A stretch of 64,000 bases of DNA, taken from contig NC_083409.1 of the NCBI RefSeq assembly GCF_020745735.1, forward strand, positions 13,639,259-13,703,258. The letters are read 5' to 3'. Positions 17,509 to 39,315 of the stretch are shown here, piece by piece (position 1 is the stretch's first letter; each line of letters starts with the position of its first letter). The notes beneath the pieces were generated by a model. The model saw nothing but the letters and a program-made list of their open reading frames with translations, searched no databases and had not been told where the DNA came from. Source of the stretch: Hemiscyllium ocellatum (Eukaryota). The translations under genes were made by a program, and so were the position numbers.

Positions 17509-17523
17509 CTGCCCTCTAGTGGC
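17509..17523 (-). promoter_or_regulatory. CTCF core motif, C1 unit
   Basis: GCCACTAGAGGGCAG on minus, a perfect match to CCASYAGRKGGCRS. Confidence 0.7.
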
Positions 17524-18559
17524 GAGAGAGCGCTTGCACGGCTGCTGAGGATTATGGGTAAAGTCCCCTTCCATTCGCGCCCACACAAACCAGCAGCCAC
17601 TTCAGCTGCTTTATTGAAAACCACAAGCTTTCAAGGCGCTGTTCTTTCAACGGTGGAACTGGACGCACGGTCATACGAATTAGGGACAAATGAAGGAGAT
17701 TCATCCTCTTCAGCCTGCTCCCCATGGCTGACCTGATTATTCACCTTCTTACCTTACTCTGACAGATTTTTGATCAGCAATGACTGTCTACTTCTTCACT
17801 ACAAGCATTCAGACGTTTCAATTTCAATTCCAAAGACCTATGACCTTTGTCAGAAATCAAAACCCTGCTCATCTAGGTCTTAAATGAGGGAACTTATTTT
17901 AGTTTTATATTCTCCCTGAAAAGGAAGCATTCTTTTCACATCCACGCTGTATTCTATGCTCTTGTTGATATGACATCTGCTTTAATCAGCTGCTCTCCCA
18001 TGAGAACAGCTGCCCATCCTGCCACCTTCAATGACTGATGCACAGAAACATCCAGGTCCTACTGCCCCTACACCCATCCATACTTGTACCCTTTAGTTTG
18101 TTTTGTCTCTCCACCTTTTCCTTCCAAAATGAATCAGTGACATCTCTTTCTATTAAATTCTACCTGCGACCATTTGTTCATTCCATTATCTATACCCTTT
18201 TTGAAGTTCCACACTATCTTTTTCATGAGTCGCAGTAGATCCAACTTTCATACCATCAGCAAATTTTGAAACCATGCCTTGTGCACTCAGATTTAAGTAT
18301 TTTAAATAATTTTTAGAATGAACTATTTTATAAACTATTTTAAATCAAGCCTCAAATTTATTGCCCATCTCCAGTTGCTCGGACTGAGTTCTGAGCCAGA
18401 TCATGGGGCCGTTAAGAATGAATCGCGTCACTGTGTGGGACTGGAGTCACAGACCGGGTGATGACTGGGTCCCCTTGTCCAAACTACATTCATGAACATG
18501 ACATTGAGTTTCTTGGGTTTTTTTGTTCAGACCCCAGCGCCTTCCTTCCCAGATGTTAG

Positions 18560-19350
18560 ACGGCTCACCAATGCCCTCTCCAGGACAATTAGGGAAGTGC
18601 AACAAATAGCAGCCATTTTTGTGCCCGCCCATCCCAGGAGAAATCAAAATAAATGAGATACACTTCAAATGATCAAACTGGTGAGGCTTGAATTCATCTC
18701 TTTGAAAAACTGGAGCCTCGGCGAGAAATACAGCCATGACATGGGTGAACCTGGTTTGTCAGACTGAAAGGTGGAGTGTCCTTTGGATTGAAACTGGGAT
18801 CAGACACAAAATGAATTACACTCAAATAGCGAATAAACATCTATCAAAGCGGGTCACCAAAGTGCAAAGAGCAGCAATTTATCTGGGAGACCTCAACAGG
18901 TATCAGTGGGTGTAAGTGCTTTCGGCAGGCAAGTGTCAGATATTGTAGAACACACCAGAAACACAGTCACACAGAAAGGGAAGCTATTGGGATAGAGCAG
19001 GGAAACAGGAATAACTGAATTTCTCCACTGAGAGCTGGAAGAGGTTTTCTCGGTTGTAACTCCTCTGAGAATGATAAAGCTTGAAGGGCTGTTTATTTTA
19101 TAGACAATACTGCAGCGCGCAAGAAAGGATGGGGAGTGACAGATCTCCTCTAAATTGGAAACAATATCAGAAATAAAGGTCAATGTGATTTTGGATTGAA
19201 TATTGAGAGTAAGGAGATGGAGGGGAGAGTGACCATGGCAGCTGTCCTGAAGAATGGTTTGGTCATGGCTAGAATGGTGCACAGTTAGAGGCTGCTTTGA
19301 GGGACAATACATAGTGGGACATGGACAGGGGATCTAGGGTCACCAGAGAT
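18560..19350 (+). repeat. Conserved non-coding block Z (paralogs ~26100-26920 minus, ~38830-39190 minus)
   Basis: Shared string tgatcaaactggtgaggcttgaattcatctctttgaaa and its flanks. Confidence 0.8.
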
Positions 19351-20344
19351 GTGCAGGATAGCAAATGGAAAATGCCATGGAAAATGCAGGATTACAGGGA
19401 TAGGTCGGGTAGGTGTGGGTCGGAGTGGGGTGACCTTCAAAGGGTCTGTATGAGCTTGCTGGACTGTGTGGCCTGCTTCCACTCTGTAGGAATTCCTCGA
19501 TTCTGTGATTCTATGAAGGCCAGAACAGGATCTCAACAGTGGAGGGAGGGTATTCTGATGTTCAAAAATTCTCAAACAAATAAACACAGTAAATGTAGAT
19601 TTATCGTCACTGCAGACAAACTGAAAGGCAAAATGACTTATTCTCCAGTCATGTACTAGGTACAGAAAATAGATCAGGAAAAATATTTTGATGCAATTAT
19701 TGGAACTTAATGATGAATAATGATAAACAAAGTGCTCCATTCAAAAAAAGACAGAATTGCTTTTTAGAATTTCAACAGGCCTGAAGCAAAAGAGGAAATC
19801 AGGATCAAAGTCATTTGAGAATATAATACTTGAGTGAGACAAAGCTCTTCTTGTGAAAGCATTTCATTTTGCCTTGCTTTCTCTCCATGGATGCTGCCTG
19901 ACCCGCTGGGATCTCCAGAGTTTTGCTGTGCGATTTCTTACAAAATGTCTTGTTGTGTGAAAGACAAAAGCTTTGACAAAATGTCTCTTTTTTTCAGCAA
20001 CACTTGAATTTGGATCAGTTTGGAGAGAAAGCAGGGCCATGAAATCATCTTTCCCTGCAGGGAGGGAGGGAGTGTGTGTGGAATCTCCCATGGGCAGGGT
20101 TCTCCTGGCTGCCACCACATCAGGAAGGCTGGAGCTTGATGATCGAGCTGAATGGACAGGGCTCACTCTCACAGTCCTCAGGGCCATGGAGTCTCTTGTG
20201 ATGGGGGCATCTGCTTGGTGTCGAGGGCAGACAATGACATTGCAGTGGGATTGGAAATGGGACAACTCGACAATGGATGCTGCACAATGGCTGCACTGAC
20301 TCTTCCTCTCTGCCTGATCCTTCCCCACACAAAGGAGAAGTTGC

Positions 20345-36642: not shown

Positions 36643-36904
36643 CTGAAAGACAAAAGAACCAATTTTAGTCCCTGCCATTTGGCAGGATTTTCAACTCTCC
36701 AAACATTAACTAGCAGAACTAGTAGTTTGAACATTTGTATCCAATACAGAACAAACCTAACAAAAGAATGGCCGTTTGTTAAAATTCCTTTTTGCTGGTG
36801 CAGTTTGAAGTCCCCCACCCAGTGTACACTCTGTGTTCAACGTGGCCGAGAGACTGATTCATCAGCCGAGGGAGAACAGTACATGGTAATCAGCGGGAGA
36901 ATTC

Positions 36905-38170
36905 ATAGAATCATACAGAATAGAAGAGGCCCTTCGCCCCATCAGGTCTATGTCACCAACGCAACACTAAATCAACACAACACCCACATTCCAGAAGTGG
37001 GCCCATAATCCTAAATGTTCAGTCATTTCAGGTGCTCATCCAAGTACTTTGTGGAGGTTGTGAGGTTTCCCACCTCAACTCTCCTCCCAGGCATTCCCGA
37101 CCCCCACCCTCTGTGAAAAAGCGTTTCCTCAAATCCCCTCTAAAGCTGCTGCCTTTCACATTGAATGTGAGCCAACTTGTTCTTGACCCTCCCGGTCAGG
37201 GGTACAGCTATTTACTATCACCCTGTCTATTCCCCTCATAACCTTGTCCCCTCCATCAGGATCCCCCCCACTCCCCAAACCTTCTCTGCTCCAAAGAAAA
37301 CAACAGGAGCTTATTCATCCTCTTCACATCTGAAATGTTCCATCCCTGGGAACATTCTGGTGAATCTCCTCTGCACCCCCTCTAGTGTAATCACATCCCT
37401 CCTGCAGTGCGGAGACTACAACTGCACACAATGCTCCAGCTATGGCCTAACTACTGTTCTGTATTGCTCTAACATATCCTCCATGCTCTTTTAATCTGCA
37501 CCTAAAATGATTAAGGCAAGTACCCCCCGATCGCCTTCATAACTGCCCTGTTAGCATTTTACATCTTCAAAAGTGCATCACCTCACATTTATCTGGTTTA
37601 AATTCCATCTGCCTCAGATCTGCCCATCTGACCAATCTGGTTATATCCTGCTGTAACTGAAAACCTTCTTCTTCACTGTCAACCACCTGACCAATCTTCA
37701 CATCAAGCACAAACCCAGTTATTATCCACCTCCACATTCCCTTCGCCATTGTTCCTGTATATCACGAGCAATGTGGGACCCAACACTGATCCCTGTGATA
37801 TCCCACTGCACCCTCGACCCAGTCACACAAACAGCCTTCTAGCATCACCTTCTGTCACCTGTCACAAAGCCAAGTTTGGATCCAACTTGCCAAGTTACCC
37901 TGGGTCCCATAGCCTTGTATATCTCCTTTATCAGTCTCCCAAGTACAACCTTGTCAAAGGCCTTACTGAAATTCATATAAACCTCCTGCACCTCCCTCAT
38001 CCACACAACTGGTCACCTTCTCGACAAAATTCCAAAAGATTTGTTGGGCATGACTCCCTCTGACAAAGCTGCGTTGACTACCCCAATATGGAGATTCATT
38101 CGACCTTCAGAATTTTCTCCAATTGTATCCCTACCGCTGATGAGACACCCACTGGTTTCCTTGTCCATAT
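36905..38170 (-). mobile_element. CR1 fragment
   Basis: EFKPDKCEVMHF and CR1 3' tail. Confidence 0.75.
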
Positions 38171-39300
38171 CTGGCCTGATGCCATGTGACTTCATCAGGC
38201 CTGGAGTCAATGTTGAGGATTTCCAGGGGTCACTCCCTCCTGGCTCTATATCACTGTGTCATCGTCTCTGCTGAGTCTTTCCTGCTGGTGGGACAGGACC
38301 TACACAAGGGATGGTGAAGGTGGTGCCTAGGACACTGTTCGGTATAATTATGTGAATATGACTGTGTCAGGCTGTTGCTTGTCAGTCTAGTCTGTGAGAC
38401 AGCTCTCCTGAATTTGACACTAGCCCGCAGATATTAGTAAGGAGGATGCAACAGGGTCAACAGGGCTGTGTTTGATGTTGTTTCCGGTGCCAAGGTCGAG
38501 GCCAGGTGGCCCATCAGGTTTCATTCTGTTTCTGAGACTTCCCAGCGATTGTTAGAATGGAGGGCCTTGCTCGGCCATTACAGAAGGTGGTTAACAGTTA
38601 ATCTCATTGCTGTGGGTCTGGAGTCACGTGTAGACCAGACAAGGTAAGGGTGGCAGATTTCCTTCCCGAAAGGACATCGGTCCTTCGTCTCAATATCTCT
38701 TTAACATAACCCTGATCACTCACAGATCAGAACTACTTTATCCGAGAACATTCAATCAACGCACTTCAGGAAGGAGTCACGTTGGAAGAGCAACAAACAA
38801 GAATGGAGATGGAGACGTGGAGCTTCAAATACTGATCTTTGTACTTTGATGGCACGCTTTGATGGCTGTTTGTTAGATCTTTCCGTATAATTTTTTTTTG
38901 CTGATCCCACTGCTAATCCGAAGGACACTCCACCCTTCAGTCTGACAAACCAGATTCACCACCTTGCAGTCTGACAAACCAGGTTCACCCATTTCAAGGC
39001 TCTGGTTCTGGCCGAGACTCCAGTCTTTCAAAGAGATGAATTCAAGCCTCACCAGTTTGATCATTTGAATTGTATGCCATTTATTTTGATTTCTCCTGGG
39101 ATGGTGTGGGCGTTGACGTGTCGGTTATTTGTTGCTCTTCTCAAATTGTCCTGGAGATGGCGATGGTGAACCATGTAATATCTGGGAAGCAGTTGACAGG
39201 TCATTCCCACTGGAATCCACTTGAATGACTGCAGGTTTGTTTGTGGCTAATGGAAGGAGGCATTACCCATAATCCTCAGCAGCAGTGCAAGTACTCTATA

Positions 39301-39315
39301 GTTACTGGAAGACAG
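39301..39315 (+). promoter_or_regulatory. Degenerate CTCF motif, C4 unit
   Basis: GTTACTGGAAGACAG at the homologous position; 5 mismatches to the other two copies. Confidence 0.5.

Follow-up and report, generated by a model that had tools for sequence, protein, structure and literature searches.

Do CTCF sites close off individual immunoglobulin (Ig) light-chain clusters in sharks? The question is raised by a 64,000-nucleotide stretch of the Hemiscyllium ocellatum genome (contig NC_083409.1, positions 13,639,259 to 13,703,258; the whole stretch is referred to here as the window), in which CTCF-type motifs lie several kilobases 3' of kappa constant-region (C) exons, numbered C1 to C4 with the cassettes to which they belong. 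There are two exact copies of one strong motif, sites A and B, and a third, decayed copy, copy C:

17508-17523, minus strand: site A, CTCF-type motif with the exact sequence GCCACTAGAGGGCAGC, pointing at C1 from 5,976 bp 3' of that exon; 19.9 bits
30515-30530, plus strand: site B, same 16-mer as A, 5,804 bp 3' of the dead C3 exon and pointing at C3; 20.0 bits
39301-39316, plus strand: copy C, paralogous, GTTACTGGAAGACAGC, 17,030 bp 3' of the C4 exon; -5.5 bits

On balance we lean, if only slightly, toward reading A and B as copies of a duplicated ancestral CTCF-type site that is a plausible 3' anchor for one subfamily of kappa cassettes.

The weight matrix used for scoring is approximate, and its bit scores serve for ranking only. 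Counting the IUPAC consensus of the CTCF core, CCASYAGRKGGCRS, is independent of that matrix, and the only perfect matches to it in the window are A and B, with 0.02 expected from shuffling. The exact 16-mer likewise occurs twice, at A and B, and its core is free of CpG and scores about 20 bits, such that both sites match the CTCF core motif by consensus and by the approximate matrix alike. Copy C differs from the intact motif at five positions; all five changes are transitions and all are at information-rich positions. Sites A and B and copy C each lie antisense to their own C exon and, by the usual direction convention, each points at its own C exon. A and B form a divergent, inward-facing pair 13 kb apart, with a C-exon fragment and repeats in between. 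These measurements bear out the descriptive part of an earlier annotation of this DNA, the sequence-only reading, which had placed motifs at homologous positions about 6 kb 3' of C1 and C3 and about 17 kb 3' of C4, had called the copies at 17509 (minus) and 30515 (plus) perfect and divergent, and had counted five substitutions in the copy at 39301.

Alignment of the cassette tails, which are colinear, puts the three motif positions in homologous columns. On this alignment A and B are one ancestral event, not two independent motifs. Since all three are paralogous positions of one duplicated tail, the back-to-back geometry of A and B is a by-product of inverted duplication. The flanking sequence groups A with copy C and leaves B as the outgroup, which indicates that the intact motif is ancestral and was lost on the C lineage. 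Sites A and B are then the surviving copies of one ancestral strong site in the 3' tail of one kappa cassette subfamily, the whole tail having been copied by tandem and inverted segmental duplication. Outward from C, the tail runs through a spacer of about 5.5 kb and an enhancer-like, near-invariant block of 263 bp; the strong motif follows at a distance of 190 bp, and last comes a weaker motif in the same orientation. Among the intact copies (A, B, and one in a C. punctatum locus, L001, described below), variation is confined to low-information positions 2 and 17.

The true conservation outlier of the tail is the 263-bp non-coding block, not the motif. It is present in three copies:

17060-17320, plus strand: block of cassette 1, 190 bp C-proximal to site A, with a CACCTG E-box
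30735-30995, minus strand: block of cassette 3, paralogue of the cassette 1 block
39650-39911, minus strand: block of cassette 4, paralogue of the cassette 1 block

Among its 263 columns, 227 are invariant, and an 85-bp run that includes the CACCTG E-box is identical in all three copies. In three organisms the summed contig depth peaks over the block, and L001 carries it at 96% identity. We regard it as a candidate 3' kappa enhancer. A coding exon across the block and motif region was rejected, the open reading frames there being without a credible Pfam match. A structured RNA or the head of a short interspersed element (SINE) was likewise rejected, as a search of Rfam at E ≤ 1 over 14-42 kb returned just a sub-threshold mir-1540 elsewhere, a hairpin at 33264-33321 (minus) scoring 38 bits (E = 5.8e-5) where the family gathering score is 90.

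What might such a tail do? CTCF of elasmobranchs closely resembles that of mammals (PMC7471279), and in the bamboo shark the CTCF motif is enriched among stable open-chromatin peaks (PMC7932699). At boundaries of topologically associating domains (TADs) in skate, CTCF motifs point inward and divergent pairs stand at insulation minima, so the orientation code is present in this group (PMC10115646). Together with this evidence, the 20-bit, CpG-free core makes it likely that the strong motif, beside the best-conserved non-coding block, binds CTCF. From motif strength and from one enrichment-like read run we infer that the intact motif is probably bound; looping and any effect on rearrangement are inferred too, and what is shown is the sequence, paralogy, orientation, and uneven distribution of the sites. 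Once bound, the motif would stall cohesin arriving from its own cluster, and the stalled cohesin would hold the 3' block against the cluster. Such an anchor would stop loop extrusion or RAG scanning from entering the neighbor, like the 3' CTCF-binding elements (CBEs) behind mouse Igh. The motif itself is kept or lost regardless of whether the gene is alive.

The enrichment-like run came from public sequence data, from which contigs were aligned to 801 bp around site A at a likeness of at least 80%. This gave 58 contigs in run X5 and 209 to 339 in each of three other runs, from three organisms in total; the many contigs per run indicate that the tail is multi-copy in all three organisms. Run X5 comprises 56 M letters of contigs, the longest of mitochondrial-genome size, and X5 and the genome-sized run X6 come from one organism and one 2018 study. 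Their depths along the tail were as follows:

Motif bin (27 bp): 556 in X5, 1172 in X6
Shoulders: 90-390 in X5, roughly flat at about 530-1520 in X6
Block: 6-17 in X5, 1200-5350 in X6

Relative to X6, X5 shows a 40- to 200-fold enrichment centered on the motif, in a library of unrecorded type and a tissue other than B cells. The 2018 shark genome study included transcription-factor chromatin immunoprecipitation sequencing (ChIP-seq), according to a passage of the Squalomix paper (PMC9561540). Among the X5 loose ends shown, both A-type and B-type flanks occur and C-type flanks are absent. The factor precipitated in the 2018 study is said to have been CTCF. The X5 peak hints at occupancy of the intact copies, as a signal summed over paralogs in non-B-cell tissue. 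The genome-sized runs are deepest on the block and show no extra depth over the motif, evidence against a high-copy transposon.

The state of the genes to which these tails belong is uneven. The C exons of the window are the following:

11204-11532, plus strand: C1 exon, kappa-type C1-set domain, intact
23432-23560 (approximate), minus strand: C2, a fragment limited to the 3'-most ~100-130 bp of a C exon
36334-36643, minus strand: C3 exon, pseudogene, with a 19-bp deletion and 1 bp lost at the splice acceptor
56346-56674, minus strand: C4 exon, kappa-type C1-set domain, intact

Cassette 1 reads rightward, and the other three (4, 3, and the truncated 2) read leftward. C1 is 89% identical to C4 and only 80% identical to C3, in which the 19-bp deletion takes out the stop together with the C-terminal codons, that of the interchain Cys among them. 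The sequence-only reading had treated these cassettes as clusters of variable (V), joining (J), and C segments. That description does not fit the window: signature-pattern searches found no V, J, or recombination signal sequence (RSS) in the 64 kb, C3 is dead, C2 is a mere fragment, and both are without V and J. Related annotated genes in the fetched loci span 7 to 12 kb from V to C, and for this reason cassettes 1 and 4 probably have their V and J outside the window, past its two ends. A J-like peptide, WGTGSNL(K/E)I, is encoded at 3788 (plus) and 61568 (minus), homologous positions of cassettes 1 and 4; without a recognizable RSS, it may represent a dead J or have arisen by chance.

The decayed copy has a history of its own. 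Beside it, at a distance of 14 bp, is an insertion:

39331-39461, strand not assigned: 131-bp dispersed-repeat insertion, 14 bp from copy C

The Hemiscyllium locus L006 has this insertion at the corresponding position, next to a remnant of the motif, and that remnant and copy C have CC>TT and G>A in common. Similar remnants occur in contigs of two other organisms, for example ...CAGCTGCCTTCCGGTAAC... The shared insertion and the likeness of these remnants indicate that loss of the motif is old and marks a cassette subfamily, so that the decay of the inner copy is subfamily-wide and neither recent nor local. The dispersed repeat, about 90 to 130 bp long, is found at five or more places in the window (39331-39461, 428-515, 526-600, 34975-35051, and 53377-53454). 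Further CTCF-like motifs with the core TCCTGGAGAGGGC form a weaker family, scoring 12.8 to 16.0 bits on the approximate matrix, at homologous positions and in the orientation of the strong site:

18569-18587, minus strand: second motif of cassette 1, in the orientation of A and 1.05 kb further out; 12.8 bits
26880-26898, plus strand: second motif of cassette 3, in the orientation of B; 16.0 bits
39147-39165, plus strand: second motif of cassette 4, 150 bp beyond decayed copy C; 13.8 bits
25308-25326, minus strand: extra inverted copy of the second motif; 13.1 bits

Cassette 4 thus keeps its weaker motif though its strong site is dead. The sequence-only reading had proposed that decay of the inner site places C3 in the domain of C4. 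With a 13.8-bit motif surviving at 39147, 150 bp from the dead copy, this does not follow, and it is moot since C3 is dead anyway.

Candidate convergent partners are limited to two motifs in the J-C intron, 9814 (plus) and 8746 (minus). The first of these (9814-9832, 14.7 bits) faces site A in convergent orientation, with C1 and the conserved block in between; the second spans 8746-8764 and scores 13.1 bits. J-C intron motifs of this kind (13 to 17 bits), 1.4 to 2.8 kb upstream of the C exon, are common to two C. punctatum clusters, with counterparts at 18969 (minus) in L001 and at 19838 (minus) and 22776 (plus) in L011.

How general is the tail? A C-domain word search retrieved annotated kappa chains from six sharks, and their loci, L001 to L012, were collected with flanks of 10 kb; one came without DNA. 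A conserved inward-facing 3' motif had been expected at other clusters; when this was checked, the module of block plus motif was present within 10 kb 3' of C in one of the 12 other kappa loci, and three of the 12 were uninformative. The positive one is L001, an annotated full-length C. punctatum gene with a block 96% identical to that of the window and the motif TCGCCACTAGAGGGCATCT (minus) 8.85 kb 3' of C. The uninformative ones (L003, L011, and L012) are colinear with the cassette 1 tail, and their sequence ends short of the expected position. At L006 the sole tail is the inverted C-type tail of a neighbor. In Cetorhinus, Heterodontus, and S. torazame, nothing was alignable past about 0.7 kb 3' of C, and no strong motif was seen in the 10-kb flanks. 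The site is therefore not found 3' of nearly every functional cluster across species, L001 alone being positive among the 12 fetched loci. Some cassettes carry the module and others do not, and it therefore cannot be the general device behind intra-cluster rearrangement.

Several observations weigh against reading A and B as a selected anchor. The exact run shared by A and B, 18 bp, ranks only 14th longest in a 2.6-kb alignment of 72% identity, and identity in the 50-bp bin that holds the motif is at the background level (84/76/74%). Copy C carries 5 C-specific changes in 18 columns where the background is 15% per column (P = 0.12), a number reached by 206 of 1,398 windows (15%); accelerated decay of copy C was accordingly rejected as not significant. 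Motif state is unlinked to gene state, the intact B going with the dead orphan C3 and the decayed copy with the intact C4. Both the module and a strong inward motif were unseen within 10 kb of L002, L004/L005, and L010, which with L006 make five informative loci lacking a module of their own within that distance. A conserved 5' partner motif was not found, including 5' of V in the fetched loci. The X5 depth sums many paralogs, and comes from that same unrecorded library type and non-B-cell tissue. Two other figures bear on conservation: outside the near-invariant block, A and B agree in full over 3.7% of 14-column windows, a point in favor that is suggestive but weak, and all five copy C changes are transitions compared with 48% in the background, a difference that is nominal only (about 0.03). 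On these alignments motif conservation is close to the local neutral background. The proposal that A and B form a loop boundary accordingly stands in part. The sites are strong, inward-facing, homologous, and divergent as claimed; the geometry comes automatically from inverted duplication, and conservation is near background.

The main rival is that the site is a neutral passenger, a CTCF-like 14-mer that arose once by chance and was copied with the tail, with no selected role at Ig genes whether or not it binds CTCF. We hold this to be a serious prospect, though a doubtful one. The near-background conservation is what it predicts, as are a motif state unrelated to gene state (B at dead C3, the dead copy at intact C4), the loss of the motif from a whole old subfamily, and the failure to see it within 10 kb of several annotated full-length genes. 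It fits less well with the rarity of a 20-bit match, 0.02 perfect consensus matches being expected per window, or with survival of the motif in L001 and on both sides of the deepest split (A and B, about 72% identical), the only changes being at low-information positions. The motif moreover adjoins the most conserved non-coding block of the tail, and run X5 peaks on it. An anchor on a cassette subfamily is the reading that we slightly prefer.

A stronger proposal was that every V-J-C cluster is closed by an inward 3' CTCF anchor, which would explain why joining stays within clusters and, with the inner copy lost, would merge C3 into the domain of C4. The motifs do have the orientation and the homologous positions that it describes, and divergent CTCF pairs do mark boundaries in skate. 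We nevertheless judge it improbable, the module being within 10 kb at one of 12 other loci with three uninformative, the decay ancient and subfamily-wide, a second motif lying 150 bp from the decayed copy, the 5' partner not found, and C3 dead and without V or J. In shark light-chain clusters V and J are a few hundred base pairs apart, and that proximity alone can explain intra-cluster joining. With most loci lacking the module and B closing a dead C3, a CTCF anchor as the general cause of intra-cluster rearrangement is not sustained. Less probable still, to the point of being hardly credible, is a transposon-borne site, in which a motif within a dispersed SINE-like repeat landed behind C exons in the manner of mouse B2 SINEs. 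A dispersed repeat does lie directly beside copy C. The motif segment, however, has no occurrence outside the homologous tail position, either in the window or in about 450 kb of fetched loci, homology is unbroken from the block through the motif, Rfam gave no match, and the genome-sized runs show no depth excess on the motif relative to its flanks; transposon origin was rejected on the tail-only occurrence and the flat depth in those runs.

The anchor that we favor for the kappa cassette subfamily has counterparts in known systems. In the mouse Igk locus, the Cer and Sis elements are CTCF elements between V and J that balance V usage; they share with the shark site a kappa locus, whereas the shark candidate lies 3' of C instead. 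The nearest known arrangement is that of the mouse Igh 3' CBEs, a downstream loop-extrusion anchor and boundary, or "super-anchor," in which CTCF sites lie just past the Ig 3' enhancer region and point back into the locus (PMC10293834). In the shark tail a strong and a weaker motif of the same orientation are distal to a near-invariant candidate enhancer block, an arrangement that may correspond to the Igh 3' end. The differences are of scale and proof: the mouse has ten clustered, ChIP-proven sites that serve a single 2.7-Mb locus and over 100 VH partners in convergent orientation, whereas the shark has one strong and one weak predicted motif per minilocus of about 25 kb, in some cassettes only. 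The divergent A/B pair resembles IGCR1 of mouse Igh, a divergent CBE pair between two recombination domains, VH and D/JH (PMC10293834). IGCR1, in contrast, is a single dedicated element of a few hundred base pairs, and the shark pair consists of inverted paralogues 13 kb apart. Skate TAD-boundary sites are alike in being elasmobranch CTCF motifs, there in open chromatin, that point into domains, with divergent pairs at insulation minima (PMC10115646); the skate boundaries, by contrast, were defined by Hi-C and the assay for transposase-accessible chromatin (ATAC) on a scale of hundreds of kilobases.

Taken to its furthest, this comparison would make the kappa minilocus subfamily a miniature of the mammalian Igh 3' end, with an enhancer-like block followed by an inward-facing, CTCF-bound anchor, an extension that we consider rather unlikely. 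Were it true, the pairing of a 3' enhancer with a CTCF anchor would predate the translocon organization of antigen-receptor loci, and cartilaginous fish would use it one cluster at a time. Should the intact copies be bound and act as anchors, the pairing of an anchor with an Ig 3' enhancer would be about 450 million years old and would operate at the scale of a single minilocus. Shark clusters would then be a compact natural system for studying how CTCF limits RAG scanning and enhancer reach, with intact and naturally decayed copies side by side as built-in controls. The present window is an ordinary example: a dead exon and a C-exon fragment are what the pair flanks, and clusters do not carry the site as a rule. 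A literature search turned up no paper on CTCF at shark Ig clusters, and as far as the literature was searched the CTCF-anchor idea for these clusters is unpublished.

Other features of the window and of the searches are minor. An N run occupies 1520-1707. NCBI lists two shark-like kappa C-domain proteins, P0012 and P0021, as products of Aeromonas veronii and Salmonella enterica; their identity to the query is 80 to 84%, their contigs measure 507 and 990 bp, and almost certainly they reflect contamination of bacterial assemblies by fish DNA. A 43-bp tandem repeat of 3.1 units at 12541-12675, 1 kb 3' of C1, contains a weak CTCF-like core, CTGCCTGTAGGTGTC. The Heterodontus locus L008 has 84 units of 45 bp (3.8 kb, 70178-73991) of the same repeat at the same place behind a kappa C exon, which indicates that the repeat is old and variable in length.

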